From positions 284,924 through 348,923 of IMG/VR virus record IMGVR_UViG_3300014494_000005: DNA of 64,000 nucleotides. One strand, 5' to 3'. Positions 3,294 to 64,000 of the stretch are shown here, piece by piece. A program made the position numbers and the translations under genes. Within the stretch, counting starts at the first letter, position 1; each line of letters begins with the position of its first letter. The notes under the pieces were generated by a model that saw only the letters and a program-made list of their open reading frames with translations, had not been told where the DNA came from and did no database searches.

Positions 3294-3394
3294 TATAATG
3301 ATTGTTATGATTCGAAACAATGAGGTCCGATTCCGTTTGATTCCTAATAAGGTTATATAATATTTCAATAGTCTATATATTATAGAAAATAAAT

Positions 3395-4150
3395 ATGAAT
3401 AATAAATATATAATTATTATATTGTTATTTGTGTTGCAAATATTATCAGCACAACAACTAAATTATAAACATGGTAAACCAACTACTAAAGGTATTTGTG
3501 AATATGTTGATAATAATATTGATAGTATTATAATTGAATTTGAGAAATTTGTTGATGATAGTATCTATAATGTCTATATTGCAACCGATGACCTTAGTGA
3601 ATATTATGAAAGAGATGGTTTGGAATTAGGAGAATTTAATGCACCTAATTCAATTGTCATTACTAATCAAATAATATTTTTTGATTATGAATTAAAATAC
3701 TTATCATGGTGGAAAAAAATTAATATCAGCGAATCTAATCAATTTGTAAAAGCAACTATTTTGCATGAACTTATGCATGATTATTTTTATATTGTAATAC
3801 AGAAAACAAAAAAATTACAATCAATACAATTGGACTATCTGAATGGTATTCATATGTGTCCTATTAATAGTGGTGCAGTTTTTATTGAAGAAGGTATTTG
3901 TGAATATCTTGTGGAAAAAATGGGTCAAATGATATGTGATGATGATTATAAAAATTATAATAACGATTCTATATCAAAATATTTTAATACTTATTATGTC
4001 AAATATCATATGAGTAGATTGTTTGTAAAACCAATTGTTGATAAATTTGGTTTTGGAAAAGCAATTGAAGTCCTTGTTACTAATAAACCACCAAGTATTG
4101 ATGAAATCCAATATCCGAATAAGTTCTATAATAGATTAAAAATTTTTTAA
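3395..4150 (+). CDS. secreted zincin-type metallopeptidase-like protein
   Basis: N-terminal signal-like segment; HELMH plus downstream EEG (gluzincin-like third ligand). Confidence 0.6.
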   Translation: MNNKYIIIILLFVLQILSAQQLNYKHGKPTTKGICEYVDNNIDSIIIEFEKFVDDSIYNVYIATDDLSEYYERDGLELGEFNAPNSIVITNQIIFFDYELKYLSWWKKINISESNQFVKATILHELMHDYFYIVIQKTKKLQSIQLDYLNGIHMCPINSGAVFIEEGICEYLVEKMGQMICDDDYKNYNNDSISKYFNTYYVKYHMSRLFVKPIVDKFGFGKAIEVLVTNKPPSIDEIQYPNKFYNRLKIF

Positions 4151-4290
4151 TTATAAAAAAATTTTTTATAGAATTTTTTATGGTTTTGTTTTTGGTTAAG
4201 TATCTATATATCAGGAATTTTATTAATATTTTTTTAAAATAATTAAATATTTATAGAATTATTTTAACCTATGTGAAGATAGTCGTGTAG

Positions 4291-4363
4291 CACCCCCACC
4301 GTCCAGAGGGGGTGTAAACAGGGGGTTATAGGAGGGGGGGATACGGGGGTATATAGGTAGGGG
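4291..4363 (+). other. G-tract island (G-quadruplex-capable) with CACCCCC/GGGGGTG hairpin
   Basis: G5 4308-12, G5 4321-25, G7 4334-40, G5 4345-49, G4 4360-63 between convergent genes. Confidence 0.8.
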
Positions 4364-4437
4364 TTAGTTTAGACAGGTTCTAAATAGTAAAGTAATTATA
4401 AAAAGAGGGATGAAATTTACACCCCCCTTTAGTTTTC

Positions 4438-4959
4438 TTATACTATTTCGTAAGTAGTGCCACGAACTTTTAGGCGTTTAATGTTTTCGACCGCAATTTC
4501 TCTATGATAAACTGGTTTATCAACACCCTGATATTTGGCAGGGTCAGATTGTGGAAAATACATCTTAATTAGTGCATTTGGAATAAGGTTAAGCACTGAA
4601 TCAAAGTGAAACGACCTAAAAGTTTGTTGTGCCTTATATGTAAGGTAAAACGTTCCTTTTTCAATATGTTTACTTAAAGCTGTGCTAATACGTTTACCTT
4701 TGCCGTTCCATAAAGGTTGGCTTAAAAATTCTCTTTCTTTACCTTCTCTTTCAAGTTCGTTATTAACAGCATTTTCGTATTTATAACCAATCATGCAGCC
4801 AACATTTGCAATTTTAGTAACATTGCCAAAACGCTGTTTACCTTCTTTTGTTAATTTAGGTTCAGTAACATACTGAATTGAAGCAGGTTGCGCACCATAG
4901 CTCCAATTAGCAAGCATTACAATTAACTGATTTACTGTTATTTTTTTAGTTATTCTCAT
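4438..4959 (-). CDS. hypothetical phage protein
   Basis: ORF track; own ECF-type promoter at 4994-5019. Confidence 0.85.
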   Translation of the reverse strand: MRITKKITVNQLIVMLANWSYGAQPASIQYVTEPKLTKEGKQRFGNVTKIANVGCMIGYKYENAVNNELEREGKEREFLSQPLWNGKGKRISTALSKHIEKGTFYLTYKAQQTFRSFHFDSVLNLIPNALIKMYFPQSDPAKYQGVDKPVYHREIAVENIKRLKVRGTTYEIV

Positions 4960-6463: not shown

Positions 6464-6655
6464 TTTCTTTTTGTTTTTATTGGTTTATGTATGGTTTAAC
6501 GTAAGAAATTAAAAAAGGTTACATTTGCCAGTAAATATAATATTATGGTAAATGTTCTAAAATATATTTATTTTTTGTAACCTTTTTAAATAAAATACGT
6601 TAAATACTATATATTTCACAAAATTTTATTTATTCATTAAAAACCAAAAAGCAAA

Positions 6656-7324
6656 ATGAAAAGAACTAAAAGTGAATTATTGAGTAACACTAAAGACGTA
6701 AAAAACTCAAAGTTTATTGATAACAATACATTAAGTATTGAATATCAAAATGGAATCAAAGCAATACGCTTGCATAATACTGATATTGTCACAATAAAAG
6801 ACAATATGTATATTCTTAATTCTGGTGGCTGGCGTACACCAACAACTAAAGACAGAATTAACAAATATTCACCTGCCAGAATCAGTCAAAACAACGGTCA
6901 ATGGTTTATTAAAGGCTTTTTATTTTACGATGGAATTGAAATTAATCAATCCGGTGACATTGTTTCCAAAAAACTTGAATCTGACAATGATAAAGTTAAT
7001 AAGATGAAAAAGAAAATTTCAGATTATTGTAATCTTGTTACTAAAGAAAATCTGCCTTTACCTTCCTCTGGTGACTGTTGGGATTGTGCATTTATTTCAA
7101 AAGATGGTAAAACAATGGGAGAACTTTCAAATAGCACTCATTTATTAAATCATCTTGACGAAAAGTATTTGCATGGTAGTATTTTAGTTAATGCAATGAG
7201 AGAAACCGGATATAATGACCAGCAAATCGGTTTTCATTACTCAGCAAAATTGTATACTACTTTTAGACGTGCATTAAGAAAGTATTTGCAAAAAAGATTA
7301 ATTGCTAACATAGCAATAAGATAA
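6656..7324 (+). CDS. conserved hypothetical phage protein
   Basis: IRLHNTDIV...LNSGGWRTPTTKDRIN motif recalled from phage proteins. Confidence 0.85.
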   Translation: MKRTKSELLSNTKDVKNSKFIDNNTLSIEYQNGIKAIRLHNTDIVTIKDNMYILNSGGWRTPTTKDRINKYSPARISQNNGQWFIKGFLFYDGIEINQSGDIVSKKLESDNDKVNKMKKKISDYCNLVTKENLPLPSSGDCWDCAFISKDGKTMGELSNSTHLLNHLDEKYLHGSILVNAMRETGYNDQQIGFHYSAKLYTTFRRALRKYLQKRLIANIAIR

Positions 7325-9176: not shown

Positions 9177-9665
9177 ATGAAAATAATTAACGGTAATTTT
9201 AAAGAAATTGATTATCCGGTTGGTGACCATATTCAAGAAAATATTCCCATTATTAATAATATGGGTATTAGAATTAAATCTATTTTAATTGAAAAGAAAT
9301 TAGAAAGTGATGACCAAATTAATCTAATTTGTAGTGGTAGTTCTGGTGCTATTATATCTTCAATTATAGCAACAATTCTTTATAAAGATTTTAAAGATGT
9401 TAATATTCGTCATATAAAAAAAGACGGTGAAAGTAGTCATGCAGCAGATAATTATAAATCTCATTTTTATAGTAGTTATTTTAATGGCTTTAATATTATA
9501 GTTGACGATTTTATTTGTAGTGGTGACACAATGAAACGTATCTTTAGTAAAATACGTGACGATATTCAAATTGATATAATTGCTATTAGTAAAATTAATA
9601 ATGGTTGTGAAAAAGTTATTAATTTTTTTAAAGAACAAAAAGTTAAGATATTATTAAGAGATTAA
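9177..9665 (+). CDS. type I phosphoribosyltransferase-fold protein, paralog 1
   Basis: PRPP-binding loop IIVDDFICSGDT; LICSGSSGAII. Confidence 0.8.
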   Translation: MKIINGNFKEIDYPVGDHIQENIPIINNMGIRIKSILIEKKLESDDQINLICSGSSGAIISSIIATILYKDFKDVNIRHIKKDGESSHAADNYKSHFYSSYFNGFNIIVDDFICSGDTMKRIFSKIRDDIQIDIIAISKINNGCEKVINFFKEQKVKILLRD

Positions 9666-9724
9666 TGTAACCTTTCTAACTAAAGTCCGTATACTCATAT
9701 ATAAACCAAAAAAACAATAAAGCA

Positions 9725-10201
9725 ATGAAAACAATACACGCAGATTTTACAACAATAAAATATCCTGTTGGTGACTATATTCAATACAATATTCCAATTA
9801 TTAAGTATATGGGAGATAAAATCAAATTAATTCTAATTGAAAAGAAATTAAATACCGATGCACAAATTAATTTGATTTGTAGTGGTTCATCTGGTGCTAT
9901 TATTGCTTCAATTATTGCAACAATTCTTTATGATAAATTTGAAAAGGTATGTATTCGTTACATAAAAAAAGATGGTGAAAATAGTCATGGATTTAGTTAT
10001 ATGTGTAGTGAATGGTTTAAAGGTTTTAATATTATTGTTGATGATTTTATTACTACTGGTGCAACAATGAAATATATTTTTAATAAAATCAATAATAATA
10101 CTAAAGTTGATTTAATTGCTGTTAGCGAAATTGATTGTGATTGGCTTAATAGTATTAATTATCTTAGAAAAAAGAAAGTTGGAATTTTATTAACTAAATA
10201 G
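9725..10201 (+). CDS. type I phosphoribosyltransferase-fold protein, paralog 2
   Basis: IIVDDFITTGAT; closely similar to preceding ORF. Confidence 0.8.
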   Translation: MKTIHADFTTIKYPVGDYIQYNIPIIKYMGDKIKLILIEKKLNTDAQINLICSGSSGAIIASIIATILYDKFEKVCIRYIKKDGENSHGFSYMCSEWFKGFNIIVDDFITTGATMKYIFNKINNNTKVDLIAVSEIDCDWLNSINYLRKKKVGILLTK

Positions 10202-32766: not shown

Positions 32767-35070
32767 ATGAAATATGGTGTTAATAATTATTCAGATGTTG
32801 AAACACTAACAACAACAGAAGAAAGAGAAATTACATTATCATCAGACTGCCAATCAATTATTTTTCAAATGTTTTCTAAAAATATTTATAGTAATCCTAT
32901 TGGGAGTGTTGTACGTGAAATAACTTCAAATAGTTTTGATTCGCATATCGAAGCAAAAGTCAATGCACCTGTTTTAATTAAAAGAGGTTATGACAAACAA
33001 ACTAATAGTTATTATATTTCTTTTATTGATTATGGGGTTGGTATGTCACCAAAACGTATTGAAAAGGTGTTTTCTGTTATGTTTAATAGTACTAAACGTA
33101 TTGATAATGAACAAATTGGTTGCTTCGGCTTGGGGTCCAAAACCCCTCTGGCTTATAAGCGTAGTACTGGTTTTGGAGAAGGAGAATATGATAATTCTTA
33201 TTCTATTATTACAATATTTAATAAAATTAAATACATATATCAAATATATGAAGGTAAAAATTCTCCTAAAATATCTTTATTGCACAGCGAATCCGTGAAC
33301 GAACACAACGGTACTGAAATTCGTATACCTGTATTAGAGAAAGACCTACAGACATTTGCAAAAGAAATGGTACGTCAACTCTATTATTTTGAAAACGTTA
33401 TTTTTGAAGGTTTTGATAAAGACGAAAGTCATTATGAAGAAACTTTGACAAATGAATATCAAATTATCAGGGGTAAATCTTTCTTATTCAGAGGAAGTGA
33501 ATACAGCGAAAAAATGCACGTATGTTTAGGCAGGGTTGCATATCCGATAGACTATACTGTACTTGGTTTAAGTTCAGGTGATTATTACCTTCCAGTTGCA
33601 GTAAAACTTGAAGTAGGAGAAATAGGTGTAACAGTATCGAGAGAAAGTCTGGATTACAGTGAAACTACGATTAAGATATTAAAGAAGAAATTGGAAGCAG
33701 CAAAGAAAGAAATTATGGAATTAATCACCAAGCAGTATCAGAATGTACAGACATTGGAAGATTACTTTAATGTAAAACATAATTTTGGTGTATTGATTTT
33801 CAGTAATGGTAGCAGTATTAATACTGGCAATCTTATTAAACAATCTGATGTTGATTTCTCAAATTTCAAATACAGTTTTATGAAGATGCCTTCTGACAGG
33901 CATTTGTTTAAGTTCTTTTTCAAGTCTCGTACTTATGGTAAGAAACCCCGCAAAAGTCGTTATAGTAATAATGGTTATGAATTTGACGGTGGTTATGATG
34001 AATTACAAAAGAATAAAAACTTATTATATTTTGAAGATACTTTTGTTCGCAAGATTGTTAAGCAAGCATATTTAAAGTCTTTGTATGAAATGTATCATAT
34101 TATTGAAAAACGCAATATTGCTGATAATTGCTTGCGTCATGAAATTGCTGAACTTTTTAATGTAGCAATTGATAATACTTGTGATGCTAACGGCAAACCA
34201 ATTGCTTATGTTCAGACCTTGCTTGAAATGCAGGAAGAATATTTTGAAATTGTACGCAAGTATGCACAGGATTATGATAAAATAGAAGTACCGGAAGATT
34301 TTGTAATTGACAGAAAGAAAAACTCAATGTCCAAAGACTTACGTAATACAACTATTCCTGTTAAGTTCGTAGGTGGATATTCAAAATACAGAATTAAACT
34401 TGAAAATCTTTTTGATTATAATTGTCCGATTTTCTATGGCAATCAGGGTGATGAAACTAAATTGCATGAAATCTATAGAATATTCACAACATTATTTGGT
34501 GAAGATATTCCAGTTACTTTTTACAGTGATTATGACCATCAGTTTGAAAATAGAAGGTCTGGCAAGTCAAATAAGAAAAGTATAATGTTCATCATATTGG
34601 CTGAAAACAACCTTAAATATATGCAGTATTGCAAGAAAGCATATAAGATAGACCAGTTCTTTCAGAAGATATTGTACAGGAAATCTGATGCTGTTATGCA
34701 GTATTTTCAAACCAATAATATTATCGAAAAATTTCGTAGCATTCAGGAATTATATACAAGCAAATCATTTATCAAAATAGATACCAAATGGGGTAAGAAA
34801 ATAAATGATATAAAAGCCAGTATTGATGCAATTCCTGCAAAAGGTAGAGAAGATAAGATTGGTGGTATTAAACCGTATTTATCTACTTATTTTGACTTGT
34901 CAAATATAAAAATGACTGCAGTACAAAAGAAATTGGAAAAGCAAATTGACGAAGTTCTGGCATTACAGGCAAAGAATGAAAAGGTTTTACAGTACATTAA
35001 TTTACCATATAGAATTGAAAGTCTTGATGATAAATTAATTACCATCTTACAAGTAGTAATGGAATTTTAA
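32767..35070 (+). CDS. rIIA: rIIA-like protein (GHKL/HSP90-type ATPase N-terminus)
   Basis: VVREITSNSFD, DYGVGMS, GCFGLG.K, NGTEI; 767 aa; rIIB-like gene downstream. Confidence 0.85.
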   Translation: MKYGVNNYSDVETLTTTEEREITLSSDCQSIIFQMFSKNIYSNPIGSVVREITSNSFDSHIEAKVNAPVLIKRGYDKQTNSYYISFIDYGVGMSPKRIEKVFSVMFNSTKRIDNEQIGCFGLGSKTPLAYKRSTGFGEGEYDNSYSIITIFNKIKYIYQIYEGKNSPKISLLHSESVNEHNGTEIRIPVLEKDLQTFAKEMVRQLYYFENVIFEGFDKDESHYEETLTNEYQIIRGKSFLFRGSEYSEKMHVCLGRVAYPIDYTVLGLSSGDYYLPVAVKLEVGEIGVTVSRESLDYSETTIKILKKKLEAAKKEIMELITKQYQNVQTLEDYFNVKHNFGVLIFSNGSSINTGNLIKQSDVDFSNFKYSFMKMPSDRHLFKFFFKSRTYGKKPRKSRYSNNGYEFDGGYDELQKNKNLLYFEDTFVRKIVKQAYLKSLYEMYHIIEKRNIADNCLRHEIAELFNVAIDNTCDANGKPIAYVQTLLEMQEEYFEIVRKYAQDYDKIEVPEDFVIDRKKNSMSKDLRNTTIPVKFVGGYSKYRIKLENLFDYNCPIFYGNQGDETKLHEIYRIFTTLFGEDIPVTFYSDYDHQFENRRSGKSNKKSIMFIILAENNLKYMQYCKKAYKIDQFFQKILYRKSDAVMQYFQTNNIIEKFRSIQELYTSKSFIKIDTKWGKKINDIKASIDAIPAKGREDKIGGIKPYLSTYFDLSNIKMTAVQKKLEKQIDEVLALQAKNEKVLQYINLPYRIESLDDKLITILQVVMEF

Positions 35071-37542: not shown

Positions 37543-38787
37543 ATGAAAAAAATTAATGCTGTCAAGACCGGGAATGTAATAAATTTATCAATTGATGGTA
37601 AATTGCATAAAAAGAACTGTGGTAGTTCCATAGAAGCAGACGAACTGTTCAAGCTCGTATTGATAGCAAAGGAAAATCCCACAGATGAAAATATTAAAAA
37701 TCTCCGTGCATACCTTAACGAAAGAACAAGGGTTGCAATGATGGCAGGTCTGGAAGCAGACAGTGAAACTGGTGAAGTTTATCTTGCAGGTTTCAACACG
37801 CCAATTCCAATGACTTTGGTTGAGGTAATTAAAGAATATCATGAAAATGGTTATCCATTGGATGCAATCATTAATTTCTGGAAGTTATTGATGATTAACC
37901 CCGATTTACGTGTACGTACAAGTCTTTTCGATTTTATTACAACCCATGATTTTGTCCTGACAGACAAAGGTTATATGGTTGTGTACAAAGCAGTGTACAG
38001 AAAAGATGAAAATGTTGACCATTCATTTGAAGAATTCGTTACCAATCAGGCATTGCACGTAAAGAAAAACTGGAAATGTAGTCCGAATAAGTACGTGGTA
38101 TACAAAGATTTTCAGAAAAGTTTTGATGATGATGGTGAAATTGATGATATTGATTATGAAGATTTTACCTATCAGATAACTAAAATAGAAACTGCCGAAA
38201 ACTGGAACGAAAAAGAAAAAGGTATTGAAATTATGGGTAAACTCGGTGAATTATTCTCTGCTATTGTTAATAGTGATAATCAGGAAAGCACCGAAAAGAC
38301 TGCAAAATATACCGATATGCGTACACGCAGCATGAATATTGAACTCGGTGTTCCTGTTCATATGCCACGTCACGAATGTGATAGTGACCCTGCAGTTGAT
38401 TGTTCATATGGACTTCATTGTGGTGCAACAAAGTACGTTGAAACATTCGCAGGTAGTTCAAGTGTAATACTTGTATGTCTTGTTAACCCTGCTCATGTGG
38501 TTGCCGTTCCTGATTATGACCACAGTAAAATGAGGGTTGCCGAATATTTCCCGTTTGCTTTTGCTACATATAATGATGGTAAAATTGACATCATTGAAGA
38601 AGCATATTTTGAAAATGATTATCAGGTATATGAACTCGAAGAACTGGAAAAACAAATTGAATTAATTCAGGCAAATGAAAAACCGATTGAAACTGCCATT
38701 GCTGCAGAAGAAGATGAAAGACCAATGACTGAATTAATGAAAATAATTGAGTCAAGAATTATAGATATTGAAAATTTTAAAGATTAA
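37543..38787 (+). CDS. rIIB: rIIB-like protein
   Basis: FWKLLMINP..R...LFDF...LTDKGY.V.YK...CSYGLH.G...V.VP.DY...KMRV.EY. Confidence 0.85.
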   Translation: MKKINAVKTGNVINLSIDGKLHKKNCGSSIEADELFKLVLIAKENPTDENIKNLRAYLNERTRVAMMAGLEADSETGEVYLAGFNTPIPMTLVEVIKEYHENGYPLDAIINFWKLLMINPDLRVRTSLFDFITTHDFVLTDKGYMVVYKAVYRKDENVDHSFEEFVTNQALHVKKNWKCSPNKYVVYKDFQKSFDDDGEIDDIDYEDFTYQITKIETAENWNEKEKGIEIMGKLGELFSAIVNSDNQESTEKTAKYTDMRTRSMNIELGVPVHMPRHECDSDPAVDCSYGLHCGATKYVETFAGSSSVILVCLVNPAHVVAVPDYDHSKMRVAEYFPFAFATYNDGKIDIIEEAYFENDYQVYELEELEKQIELIQANEKPIETAIAAEEDERPMTELMKIIESRIIDIENFKD

Positions 38788-52067: not shown

Positions 52068-53216
52068 ATGTTAAAAGCATACAAATATAGAATATTTCCA
52101 AATCAAATCCAAATAAATCTTCTTGCTAATATATTTGGTCAAGTTAGATTTGTTTATAATCTTGGATTAGAAACTAAAATCTGTGCTTATGCAGGAAATA
52201 AAAAGAATATTGATTGTTTTGACCTTATTAAACAAATAAAAGAATTAAAAGATAACGAATGTTATTGGTTAAAGGAAGCACCTTCACAGGCATTACAAAT
52301 GTCTTTAAGAAATTTGGATAATTCATATACTAACTTCTTTAAAGGTAAAGGATTTCCTAAATTTAAGGGTAAGTATGCAAGACAAAGTTTTCAATTACCT
52401 CAAGGTATACATATTACTAAAGATAATAAACAAATTTTCATTCCTAAATTAAAATATGTTGGAATTGATTTAGATAGAGAATTTAAAGGAATTATAAAAA
52501 CCGTAACAATAAGTAAAACCGTAACTAATAAATATTTTGTATCAATATTAGTTGAAAATGATATTAAAATTCCCAATAAAAAACCAATTATTGATTCAAC
52601 AACTATTGGTATAGATTTGGGAATTAAAGATTTTGCAATAACATCTGATGGAAAGAAATTCGAGAACAAAGATTTCTTTAAATCAAAACAACATCAACTT
52701 AGAATTGAACAACGTTCACTTTCAAGAAAAGTTAAAGGAAGTAACCATTACTATAGGCAAAAAATGGTAGTTGCTTTACTTCATGAAAAGATAAAGAATC
52801 AAAGACAGGATTATCTACATAAAATCAGTAAATCTCTTATTGATAATTATGATACAATATGTCTTGAAGACTTAACTGTTAAAAATATGGTTAAGAATCA
52901 TTGTTTGGCAAGAGCTATATCTGATATGGGTTGGAGTGAGTTTAAAACAATGCTTGAATATAAAGCTAATTGGTACGGAAAGAATGTTATAACTATTGGC
53001 AGATTTGAGCCAAGTAGTAAGATTTGCAGTTGTTGTGGTAATATCAACAAGAATTTAACTCTTAATGATAGAGAATGGACATGTTCAAATTGTAAGACTA
53101 TACATGATAGAGATGTTAATGCTGCGATTAATATAAAGAATTTCGGACTTAGGAACAAGTCTGGCGTTGCGCAAAGTGATGGGATACCATGTGCTTGCAG
53201 CGTAGAAGTTAATTAA
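52068..53216 (+). CDS. tnpB: TnpB RNA-guided endonuclease (IS200/IS605 type), no TnpA
   Basis: [10 protein letters not shown]-terminus; RuvC D (GIDLG), E (LEDL), D (DRDVNAA); CxxC...CxxC. Confidence 0.95.
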
Positions 53217-54603: not shown

Positions 54604-55845
54604 ATGCAATTAGTAGAACAACATATTATTAAACAAGATAATCAATATTTTAAAGAAATTGATAATCTTTGCTTTCTTTCTAAAAATTTATATAATAGTT
54701 GTTTATATCTTATTCGACAAGAATTTATTCATAATAAAAATAATGTTTTATATGAATTGCATCATCGAATGAAAAATACTGAACAATATTGGGCATTACC
54801 TGCTAAAGTATCATCAAACGTTATTATTGCCGTACAACATAATTTTAAATCGTTTTTTGCTGCGCTAAAAGTATATAATATAAATCCATCTAAATTTACA
54901 TCAAAGCCAAAATTACCTTATTATTTAGATAAAGAAAATGGAAGATTTTTTGTATCATATACTAACCAAGCTATTTCTAAGAAAGTGTTTAAAAAAACAA
55001 ATAAAATTAAATTAAGTAAATCAAACATTGAATTTAAAACCAAAATAAATGATTTTAATGTTATTGATTGTATAAGAATAATACCTAAAATTGGATATTA
55101 TGTTATTGAAGTGGTCTCAACTATAGAGGATATACCAATATTATTGAATAATGATAAATATTCAAGTATTGATTTGGGGGTAAATAATTTAGCCACTGTT
55201 GTTAGTAATATTAAAGAAATTAAACCATATATAATTAATGGAAAACCGTTAAAATCAATAAATCAATATTATAATAAGAAAAAAGCATGTTTACAATCAA
55301 TATTAAGAATTAGAAATAAAAAATATGGTTCAAAGCAATTAAACAAATTAAATTTAAAAAGAAAATGTAAGGTTGATAATTATTTACATAAAGCAAGTAA
55401 AATAATTATTAATGAATTAATTAATAATAACATTAACACATTAATTATTGGTAAAAATAATTATTGGAAAAATGAAAGTAGATTAAATAAAACAAATAAT
55501 CAAAATTTTGTACAAATACCACATAGTAGATTTATAGATATGCTAAAATATAAATGCGAAAGACGGGGTATTAATGTTATGTGTAGAGAAGAAAGTTATA
55601 CAAGTAAAGCAAGTTTTCTGAATTTAGATTATATACCTTCTTATAAAAAGAATGATAAAACAGTGTATGTTTTTAGTGGTTATCGTGAACATAGAGGGAT
55701 ATATAAAATTAAAAATAGTAATATTAAAATAAATTCAGATGTAAATGGCGCATATAACATATTAAGAAAAGCAATCCCAAATGCATTTGCAAATGGGATA
55801 GAGGGTATTGGAGTATATCCAGAAATCATAAATATTTTGAAGTAG
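54604..55845 (+). CDS. tnpB: TnpB-family endonuclease with rearranged RuvC-II, no TnpA
   Basis: MQLVEQHII N-terminus; SIDLGVNN; IIGKN at the usual Glu position; EESYTS; NSDVNGAYNI; no CxxC finger. Confidence 0.9.
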   Translation: MQLVEQHIIKQDNQYFKEIDNLCFLSKNLYNSCLYLIRQEFIHNKNNVLYELHHRMKNTEQYWALPAKVSSNVIIAVQHNFKSFFAALKVYNINPSKFTSKPKLPYYLDKENGRFFVSYTNQAISKKVFKKTNKIKLSKSNIEFKTKINDFNVIDCIRIIPKIGYYVIEVVSTIEDIPILLNNDKYSSIDLGVNNLATVVSNIKEIKPYIINGKPLKSINQYYNKKKACLQSILRIRNKKYGSKQLNKLNLKRKCKVDNYLHKASKIIINELINNNINTLIIGKNNYWKNESRLNKTNNQNFVQIPHSRFIDMLKYKCERRGINVMCREESYTSKASFLNLDYIPSYKKNDKTVYVFSGYREHRGIYKIKNSNIKINSDVNGAYNILRKAIPNAFANGIEGIGVYPEIINILK

Positions 55846-62072: not shown

Positions 62073-62330
62073 TTAATTTTTATTTAAAACATAATCAATT
62101 TTATCAACCATATTAATACAATTATTGTGTTTATCAAGTAATGCTACCAATAAAAGTAAGTCTCTACTTTCTTTTAATAATTCAATTATGTTTTTTTGTT
62201 TTGATGTTTCAGATATATAATTTTCGTGTGCTTTCCAACCTTTAAGAAAATATTGTTTAGATGTTTCTTTAGAGTTTTTAATGATATTTTTTATCTCAAC
62301 ATCTGTTAAATTATTTACACTCATTTTCAT
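62073..62330 (-). CDS. hypothetical protein
   Basis: ORF track. Confidence 0.7.
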   Translation of the reverse strand: MKMSVNNLTDVEIKNIIKNSKETSKQYFLKGWKAHENYISETSKQKNIIELLKESRDLLLLVALLDKHNNCINMVDKIDYVLNKN

Positions 62331-62585
62331 GTGTTTTAAGATAGTTTTGATATTCGGTTTTAGTTAAAAAAACTGTTTCACCATCAGAAGTACTTGCAAT
62401 AATAGCTCCATCTTCATAGGTATTTATTATAAAAAGTTCATTCATATTTGTGATGTCTTATTATGTGATTATCTGATTTTAACAATACATTATAATTATT
62501 ATGTAGATAATGTTTACCTGCCTTTGGTCTATGATGATTTAAATAAGGATTTTTCCTTGTAGTACCACAAGCAATAATTAATAAT

Positions 62586-62715
62586 ATTGTAAAAATTAAT
62601 TGTATGTTTTTCATTCTTTTCGTTTTTAAATGTTACAAAAAAATAATAAAATTGTAAAAATTAATTGTATGTTTTTCATTCTTTTTGTTTTTAAATGTTA
62701 CAAAAAAATAATAAA
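62586..62715 (+). repeat. 2 x 65-bp direct repeat, one mismatch
   Basis: units begin at 62586 and 62651. Confidence 0.9.
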
Positions 62716-62719
62716 ATTG

Positions 62720-63019
62720 TTACAAATTTTTAATCAATTCTTCTAATTTATTTTGATTTTTTTCTTTTGAAAGTTTGTATAATTCTTGAGGAGTGAGAGT
62801 CAATAGTTCTTCAAAGCTATAACGTAGATAATCTTTTTCATTTTCATCATATTCTAATTGATTTTTTGATAACCATATGGGTGAATATTCTTTATCAATA
62901 CTACCCAAATCTTCATTTATCATATGATTATTTACTTCATTTAAATATTTAATACGTTCAGCATTTAACTTAATCCATAGATTACGTTCAGATTCTGATT
63001 TAAAAAAATTTTTTGACAT
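62720..63019 (-). CDS. hypothetical protein
   Basis: ORF track. Confidence 0.75.
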   Translation of the reverse strand: MSKNFFKSESERNLWIKLNAERIKYLNEVNNHMINEDLGSIDKEYSPIWLSKNQLEYDENEKDYLRYSFEELLTLTPQELYKLSKEKNQNKLEELIKNL

Positions 63020-63031
63020 AATTACTTATAA

Positions 63032-63841
63032 TTAAATTGGTAACAAAACTTTATTAAGTAAATTAGTACTCACATGTGTATAAATTTCAGTTGTTTTAGA
63101 ACTACTATGTCCAGCTATTTTTTGAATAACTCTTAAATCTGTTCCTTGCTCTAATAAAGCAGTAAAACAAGAATGTCTAAGTAAATGAAAATGATATTCT
63201 TTACCTATATAATGTTTTACTAATTTATTACAACTCTCAGAAGAATACTGTAAAGAATTATTTTGCCCGTTAAATAAATAAATTTTAGGCTTAAATCGCA
63301 CATAATATTTTCGTAGTATCTCTAATATGTTTCGAGATAATGGAACTATTCTGTCTTTTTTACCTTTTGCTTGTCTAATATTTATAAGCATTCTTTTTGA
63401 ATCAATATCTTCTATCTTTAAATTAATAACCTCACTCACTCTTAATCCAACAGAATACGCTAAAGAAATAATTGCTTTATGCTTTAAATTTTGAATCTGG
63501 TTTATTTTATCGAGCAAAAAATCTCTATCAATTATCTGGGGTAAGTGTTTTTCTTTACGAGGTCTCTGAAAATTAATTTTGTCATATTTTTTATCGAGGA
63601 CCTTTTCATAAAGAAATTTAATTGCATTAATTATCTGATTTTGTTGTGAAATAGAAGTAAAATGATATTTATTAAGATAATTTTGAAAATCATTTGAAAC
63701 TAAATGTTGAGGATACTTATCCACAACAATTAAAAAATTTTCAATATAATAAATATAAATTTCAATAGTATGTCTTGAGTAATTAAAATAATTTAATTTT
63801 TCAAAACAAATCTTTAAAATGTTGATGTATTTATTGTTCAT
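63032..63841 (-). CDS. tyrosine recombinase with SAM-like N-terminus
   Basis: GLRVSE (R), HLLRH, GHSS, TEIY; lacks the IntI-specific insertion. Confidence 0.95.
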   Translation of the reverse strand: MNNKYINILKICFEKLNYFNYSRHTIEIYIYYIENFLIVVDKYPQHLVSNDFQNYLNKYHFTSISQQNQIINAIKFLYEKVLDKKYDKINFQRPRKEKHLPQIIDRDFLLDKINQIQNLKHKAIISLAYSVGLRVSEVINLKIEDIDSKRMLINIRQAKGKKDRIVPLSRNILEILRKYYVRFKPKIYLFNGQNNSLQYSSESCNKLVKHYIGKEYHFHLLRHSCFTALLEQGTDLRVIQKIAGHSSSKTTEIYTHVSTNLLNKVLLPI

Positions 63842-63877
63842 AATTAATTAGTTAAGTAGTAAACTTTATATATTATA

Positions 63878-63911
63878 GTTAGGTGCAAGCGTGGGTCGGC
63901 TGCGCTTGCAC
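63878..63911 (+). other. GTTRRRY core-like site plus GC-rich hairpin
   Basis: GTTAGGT 63878-84; GTGCAAGCG/CGCTTGCAC stem. Confidence 0.5.
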
Positions 63912-63918
63912 ACTATTA

Positions 63919-64000
63919 CTATTTTGAACTTGACGAGCTACTTTTAAAAAGTATGCCAGCTAATAAGTTCAATCCTAATGCCTGCCAAAATCCGATTTTA
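63919..64000 (-). CDS. C-terminus of a small membrane protein (cut by window edge)
   Basis: KIGFWQALGLNLLAGILFKSSSSSSK*. Confidence 0.65.
   Translation of the reverse strand, partial: KIGFWQALGLNLLAGILFKSSSSSSK

Follow-up and report, generated by a model that had tools for sequence, protein, structure and literature searches.

A 349-kb phage carries, beside a small tyrosine recombinase gene, a row of small genes separated by hairpin sites resembling the attC sites of integrons, and comparison with related phages suggests that these genes are exchanged as cassettes at a fixed junction upstream of the recombinase. Similar arrangements recur in many other phages and in Bacteroidota chromosomes, and no description of such a system was found in the literature that could be searched, subscription journals not being covered. 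The stretch of DNA that was analysed, hereafter the window, comprises 64,000 nucleotides and is the last 64 kb of G000, an IMG/VR virus record of 348,923 bp (IMGVR_UViG_3300014494_000005). G000 is a single contig with 26% G+C, classed as linear and estimated to be 100% complete. As it contains 33 tRNAs, rIIA and rIIB, and a terminase, it is a T4-like jumbo phage, and not an obviously temperate one. An alternative genetic code, suggested by a CTA-anticodon tRNA, was rejected, since coverage by ORFs of at least 100 aa is 82.6% under code 11 and rises by only 0.5% if TAG is read through. The features at the end of the window are the following:

63032-63841, - strand: tyrosine recombinase of 269 aa, with its ATG at 63839-63841.
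63864-63881, - strand: attI-like box, reading TAAC followed by TATAATATATAAAG, where cassettes are joined to the integrase side; 36 nt separate TAAC from the ATG.
63878-63884, + strand: GTTAGGT (ACCTAAC on the - strand), the junction core, the crossover lying within or next to TAAC/GTTA.
63883-63911, no strand assigned: 9-bp GC-rich hairpin, GTGCAAGCG (63883-63891) paired with CGCTTGCAC (63903-63911), with an 11-nt loop, between the stop codon of the cassette ORF and the core.
63919-64000, - strand: 3' part of the ORF of the integrase-proximal cassette, with its stop at 63919-63921, encoding a small membrane protein (66-76 aa in full) and cut by the contig end.

An earlier note, made from the sequence alone, had pointed to the GTTAGGT heptamer upstream of the recombinase, joined to the GC stem and following a small co-oriented ORF, and had inferred the first junction of a phage-borne cassette array continuing beyond the window. 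The observation is confirmed, except that the gap to the ATG is 36 nt and not 37, and the inference is supported. Nevertheless, the heptamer alone is not above chance, GTTRRRY occurring 104 times in the window against 141 +/- 11 expected, and its meaning comes only from comparison with relatives. Besides, the GC stem, which overlaps the last two bases of the heptamer and lies 7 nt from the stop of the small ORF, is cassette cargo and not part of the conserved site: a pattern search over 180 loci detected it only in G000 itself and in the two copies of this cassette in the contig L001 described below. It may be an RNA 3'-end structure.

The continuation of the array was revealed by L001, one of 215 relatives of the recombinase in IMG/VR, which is 100% identical and joins the end of G000 (L001 9842 onward) to its start (L001 up to 6691), with 3.15 kb in between. 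In L001, a 394-bp unit holding the small membrane-protein ORF and the GC hairpin is present twice, at 6569-6962 and 9571-9964, and both contig ends of G000 lie inside this repeat, the rest of the truncated cassette, including its attC-like site, being found at G000 1-127 plus 148 bp missing from G000. In the same line, Logan contigs from four independent peat, permafrost and bioreactor runs show the same graph, with a 394-bp unitig at about twice the neighbouring depth and a 2,668-bp unitig between the copies, although these contigs cannot tell a duplicated cassette in the genome from a genome plus a free 3-kb circle. The contig end is therefore a repeat-induced break, and the array predicted by the earlier note lies at the other end of the contig. 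Directly upstream of the recombinase, L001 displays nine small ORFs, all on its strand, separated by nine imperfect palindromes at L001 5737-5823, 6275-6359, 6571-6696, 6959-7046, 7734-7857, 8449-8536, 8882-8966, 9287-9411 and 9573-9698. None of the nine ORFs has a Pfam family, and only the membrane ORF has PHROG matches, namely phrog_705 (3e-13) and phrog_2169 'membrane protein' (4e-10). The genes downstream of the integrase (window 62073-63019) are not conserved in any related locus, so there is no accessory partner.

Once aligned, the sites share invariant TAACG on the left and TGTTA on the right, inner boxes (GTATGA / TTATAC), a long stem and a variable loop, and they fall into length classes of about 63, 100 and 140 nt. 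Among eight sites, RNAalifold predicts 24 pairs, 14 of which show compensatory changes, and single-strand DNA folds have z-scores down to -5. No Rfam family matched at E up to 1 on L001 1-11500, and a simple palindrome scanner, too noisy at 13 of 16 pairs in this AT-rich genome, was used only at 14-15 of 16. A covariance model (R1) finds sites in the whole 349-kb genome only at G000 1-127, 324-423 and 860-961, plus one lone site at 268,571-268,672. On 135 distinct sites, 97.3% of cells pair, against 71.6% in shuffles and 37-56% when partners are slid, with 789 double-change cells and 16 of 18 inner-stem pairs showing double changes; this alignment was fitted to the model, which favours the structure, but the margin is large. 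A TTG bulge on the 5' arm and three G.T pairs are also conserved, making the hairpin strand-specific. This suggests a folded single strand as substrate, as in integrons, although conserved G.T pairs on the sense strand fit an RNA structure as well as folded DNA. Whereas the GTTAGGT of the window fits the integron core GTTRRRY invoked in the earlier note, the family core is GTTA(T/G): only GTTA is invariant, and the fifth base is T in 95 of 135 sites, which breaks that consensus.

The association with the integrase extends to related phages. In the 79 other phage loci, R1 detects 324 sites at E up to 0.01, and the best 150 are all on the integrase strand, 144 upstream of the gene and 6 downstream. 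Of 49 distinct loci with at least 2 kb of upstream flank, 48 have sites, with a density of 0.77 per kb upstream against 0.03 per kb downstream, and in 71 of 71 inter-site segments the longest ORF is on the same strand, with a median of 89 aa. In addition, a conserved box (TAAC followed by TATnATATAT; motif YAAC-TA-n(2-3)-TATA) is present in 52 of 52 distinct integrase upstream regions, 36 or 51-52 nt before the ATG, against a background of 0.013 per 100 nt, the sequence before TAAC being variable and the sequence after it conserved. However, the 80 phage loci were chosen through the integrase, so that this association is one-directional. In the reverse test, a pattern scan for the left arm gave 34 loci with genuine sites, but only 1 of 28 of their records has this integrase. 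This is partly due to contigs that break in arrays, such as G007, in which 33 sites run up to the contig end, and is partly real, since G026, a complete 83,872-bp genome with terminal repeats, has 10 clustered sites and no tyrosine recombinase at all. Arrays can therefore persist, or be served in trans, without the enzyme, as CALINs do for integrons; alternatively, the sites may have a second role.

Evidence for site-specific cassette movement arises from phages that are 96-100% identical on the integrase side but diverge exactly at TAAC, as observed for the loci L024/L028, L026/L029/L031 and L054/L055/L069. The same cassette end is followed by an attC-type arm in one phage and by the attI-type box in another (L029 against L031, and L054 against L055 and L069), and cassette order is permuted between L054 and L069. 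Cassettes shared by otherwise different arrays also end at TAAC. As attI and attC share only these four or five bases, homologous recombination cannot explain the joints. Interestingly, the 394-bp cassette duplicated in L001 is bounded by TATAAC and CCTAAC and ends at this CCTAAC in both copies, one being followed by an attC arm (L001 6962) and the other by the attI box (L001 9964), which is the product expected if a circle was excised by recombination between two attC-like sites and re-inserted at attI.

Cultured phages point in the same direction. The Polaribacter phages Freya_1 to Freya_10 carry a 38.5%-identical integrase and differ by 0 to 12 small ORFs inserted exactly at an AAC core 45 nt before the integrase ATG. 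Compared with Freya_1, Freya_10 has 12 extra small ORFs (4.94 kb), and the distal junction continues as AAC-GGATATGGTATGG, resembling an attC arm. Other isolates hold different parts of that array, and Danklef phages share part of it. Model R1 gave only weak hits of 22 bits or less on Freya and Ingeline, whose sites are too diverged for this model, so the Freya evidence rests on junction comparison instead. In bacteria, genome contigs with 43-47%-identical integrases are almost all from Bacteroidota (Flavobacterium, Belliella, Pedobacter, Daejeonella, Chitinophaga and others) and carry their own arrays, confirming the statement of the earlier note that Bacteroidota relatives sit beside such arrays. 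There, the sites lie downstream of the integrase on the opposite strand, giving ORF-then-site units with the crossover core at the far end, as in canonical cassettes. No cassette shared between these arrays and the sampled phages was found at the nucleotide level, only the integrase gene matching.

The recombinase has a SAM-like N-terminal domain (PF13495, 9e-12) and a catalytic domain (PF00589, 1.6e-35), and is the only PF00589 match in the genome. The catalytic R134, K159, H219-x-x-R222, H245 and Y254 are all conserved in 43 relatives. The best solved relatives are the archaeal XerA proteins 4A8E and 5HXY. As the earlier note had stated, the enzyme lacks the IntI insertion: the alignment to VchIntIA (2A3V) covers query 19-179 and 213-268, so 33 aa stand where IntI has 80. 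Every NCBIfam equivalog or subfamily cut-off is missed, with XerA_Arch at 167.9 bits (cut-off 220), the integron integrase TIGR02249 at 152.9 bits in two stretches (cut-off 265), XerD at 135.1 (329.6), XerC at 129.1 (335) and PRK15417 at 98.3 (435).

Taken together, these data are best explained by the integrase end of an integron-like gene-cassette platform, a reading that we consider likely. It would combine a short XerA/IntI-like tyrosine recombinase, an attI-like site 36 nt upstream of its start codon reading TAAC followed by TATnATATATAAA, and an array of small single-ORF cassettes each carrying one attC-like imperfect palindrome, the mobile unit running from one TAAC cut point to the next (hairpin site, ORF, then TAAC). 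In the inferred mechanism, the recombinase excises a cassette as a circle by recombination between two attC-like sites and re-inserts circles at the attI-like site, with strand exchange in or next to TAAC, new cassettes therefore arriving next to the integrase gene. While the anatomy, the covariation, the conserved junction and the breakpoints at TAAC are observed, catalysis by this enzyme, the circular intermediate, the single-stranded substrate and the exact cleavage position remain inferences. No excised circle and no catalytic activity has been observed, and all runs were available as contigs only. The enzyme also lacks the IntI helix that reads extrahelical bases in integrons.

Two other readings are unlikely. 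First, the hairpins could be PeSL-like regulatory cassettes (promoter plus terminator stem-loops), as in the hyperplastic regions of T4-type phages, with ORFs shuffled by general recombination between these repeats and an unrelated neighbouring recombinase. In favour of this view, G000 is T4-like, the hairpins lie between small ORFans on the sense strand with conserved G.T pairs, a repeated block, TGATTTGAAACAC, follows several sites, integrase-less arrays exist, and PeSL mini-circles are documented (PMC2839356). However, the joints between attC arms and the attI box share only TAAC, too short for homologous exchange, the attI box keeps its position upstream of the integrase ATG in 52 of 52 relatives, the sites of G000 are confined to the integrase neighbourhood rather than spread over hyperplastic regions, and the outer boxes are invariant while the stem covaries, which is the pattern of a protein-recognised site. 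Second, and as doubtful, the sites could be moved by another enzyme, either a host-encoded integrase of the same family acting in trans or an IS200/IS605-type single-strand transposase, the adjacent gene being a passenger or an ordinary integrase. The integrase-less arrays, the Bacteroidota chromosomal integrases with their own arrays, and the three TnpB genes of G000, one of them 2 kb from the array, are compatible with this idea, and IS200/IS605 elements also use hairpin ends and a tetranucleotide target. Nevertheless, G000 has no Y1 transposase (no PF01797 match), the insertion hot spot is the box directly upstream of the integrase gene in every lineage, and the units have one long central palindrome rather than two different subterminal hairpins. 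Finally, an ordinary temperate-phage integrase with an upstream attP, an artefactual contig end and unrelated palindromes is very unlikely, even though PHROGs names the protein an integrase, the gene sits at the contig end and Bartlau et al. read the Freya and Ingeline homologues as a sign of a temperate lifestyle (PMC8776804), since L001 shows a repeat-induced break inside phage DNA and not a host junction, the phage has a T4-like lytic gene set, and the variable material at the junction is small phage-type ORF cassettes, not host DNA.

With integrons, such as class 1 integrons and the Vibrio cholerae chromosomal integron, the locus shares a tyrosine recombinase gene next to a fixed site where cassettes enter, mostly single-ORF cassettes with imperfect palindromes bearing outer and inner boxes, an unpaired spacer or bulge and a variable loop, structure conserved more than sequence, a crossover in a GTT/AAC core, cassettes that can be duplicated with the new copy next to attI, and arrays without an integrase. 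It is nevertheless not a member of the IntI family by that family's defining protein feature, and its carriers are lytic-type phages. In addition, if the array is read with attI on the left and the crossover at G|TTA, the ORFs point back towards attI and the integrase, the reverse of canonical integrons, so that expression from an attI-side Pc promoter is impossible and each ORF follows its own hairpin instead of preceding it. The integrase gene lies downstream of the array and is co-oriented with it. Inverted-integrase integrons (Treponema, Chlorobi and others) also have the integrase and the cassettes on the same strand, but those known still have the IntI insertion, and in the phage version the site polarity relative to the ORFs is flipped and the array lies upstream of the integrase rather than downstream. 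The integrons and CALINs reported in phage genomes, including in phages of Polaribacter (Qi et al. 2023, PMC9892861), were found with IntegronFinder and are canonical attC sites recognised by IntI1 or fragments of bacterial integrons, without description of an insertion-less recombinase, attI box or family-wide array. The PeSL cassettes of T4-type phages (Arbiol et al. 2010, PMC2839356; Comeau et al. 2014, PMC4122927) also separate small ORFan genes by conserved stem-loops, with documented modular shuffling and mini-circles, but have no dedicated recombinase and recombine through homology. Xer recombinases (archaeal XerA, XerC/XerD) are the best sequence matches, with the same two-domain size and no insertion, and the folded stem offers two inverted boxes around a spacer, like a dif core; however, many sites in direct orientation flank cargo genes here, instead of a single dif site, and the protein is encoded by phages.

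A broader view, judged somewhat more likely than not, is that these loci form a distinct and widespread class of integron in Bacteroidota and their phages, built on a short recombinase without the IntI insertion and on its own attC family, so that IntegronFinder-type searches would not see it. In phages, it would serve to acquire, duplicate and reshuffle small accessory genes, plausibly host-takeover or anti-defence genes, while host chromosomal arrays of the same family could be a shared cassette pool. It may also account for part of the 'integron-type' recombinases without recognised attC in environmental surveys: in a permafrost study, 97.4% of contigs with such recombinases had no recognised attC, and novel attC sites were proposed as one explanation (PMC13323075). 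Integrons are defined by IntI with its special insertion, and current search tools depend on that insertion and on one attC model. An insertion-less relative with its own attC family and inverted cassette orientation would give a concrete candidate for the thousands of such recombinases in soil and peat metagenomes, would mean that the single-strand hairpin recombination strategy is older or more flexible than the IntI helix suggests, and would explain how large phages turn over small ORFan genes at one locus.

In L001, the contig that joins both ends of the phage record G000, a repeated block, TGATTTGAAACAC, occurs inside the loops of two sites and just after others, at the following positions:
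L001 6597-6618, repeated block
L001 7077-7095, repeated block
L001 7706-7721, repeated block
L001 7758-7779, repeated block
This block may be a cassette-borne promoter, which would fit ORFs that cannot be expressed from the attI side. Besides, in one peat run (X8), the 2,668-bp segment between the two cassette copies (L001 6933-9600) was detected at a depth of 36 compared to 21-26 for the flanks, whereas the ratio is about 1 in three other runs. This could reflect extra tandem copies or free 3-kb circles in that population, or it could be noise in contig depth.

Further features of the G000 genome, some of them outside the window, are the following:
G000 268386-268463, outside the window, tRNA with a CTA anticodon (amber suppressor; labelled Pyl by ARAGORN)
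G000 268571-268672 (L094 8571-8672), outside the window, opposite strand to the array, lone and complete attC-like site with a variant left core (CAAC)
window 52068-53216, + strand, TnpB gene
window 54604-55845, + strand, TnpB gene
G000 about 3340-4611, TnpB gene
window about 62586-62716, two tandem copies of an AT-rich unit of about 64 nt
The suppressor tRNA lies in a 33-tRNA island at 238-283 kb. Genome-wide TAG recoding is not supported: ORFs of at least 100 aa cover 82.6% under code 11, and only 0.5% more if TAG is read through, while TAG ends 14 of 349 long ORFs. The lone attC-like site is found 108 nt after this tRNA and before a 79-aa ORF, and may be a stray or fossil cassette far from the integrase. 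Regarding the three TnpB (IS605 OrfB / Cas12f-like) genes, one copy lies 2 kb from the distal end of the cassette array, whereas no Y1 TnpA is present in the genome. Finally, the two tandem AT-rich copies are located in the gap between two small - strand ORFs downstream of the recombinase.

Arrays were also observed without an integrase. G026 (C1, 56112-63565; L302), a complete 83,872-bp genome with terminal repeats, has 10 clustered sites and no tyrosine recombinase, and its array ends at a DNA methyltransferase-like ORF. In G007 (C1, 67966-92250; L303), 33 sites over 24 kb run into the contig end. In the Bacteroidota genome contigs (L110-L180; e.g. L128 10786-20573, L166, L154, and L113), chromosomal integrases of 43-47% identity are followed by arrays whose sites lie on the opposite strand, thereby giving ORF-then-site units as in canonical cassettes. 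Many of these contigs end within about 1 kb after the integrase, as if arrays break assemblies.

Ten isolates of one cultured phage species, the Polaribacter phages Freya (loci L099 and L181-L183, from Freya_10 and Freya_1, MT732472 and MT732463), carry different parts of an array of up to 12 small ORFs (4.94 kb), which is inserted exactly at an AAC core 45 nt upstream of a 38.5%-identical integrase. Danklef phages share part of this array. This is a ready experimental model.

As for the nature of the G000 phage itself, two genes of the window are informative:
window 32767-35070, + strand, and window 37543-38787, + strand, rIIA- and rIIB-like genes
These genes mark the phage as T4-like and, together with the 349-kb size and 26% G+C, point to a lytic jumbo phage of an AT-rich host, probably belonging to the Bacteroidota.
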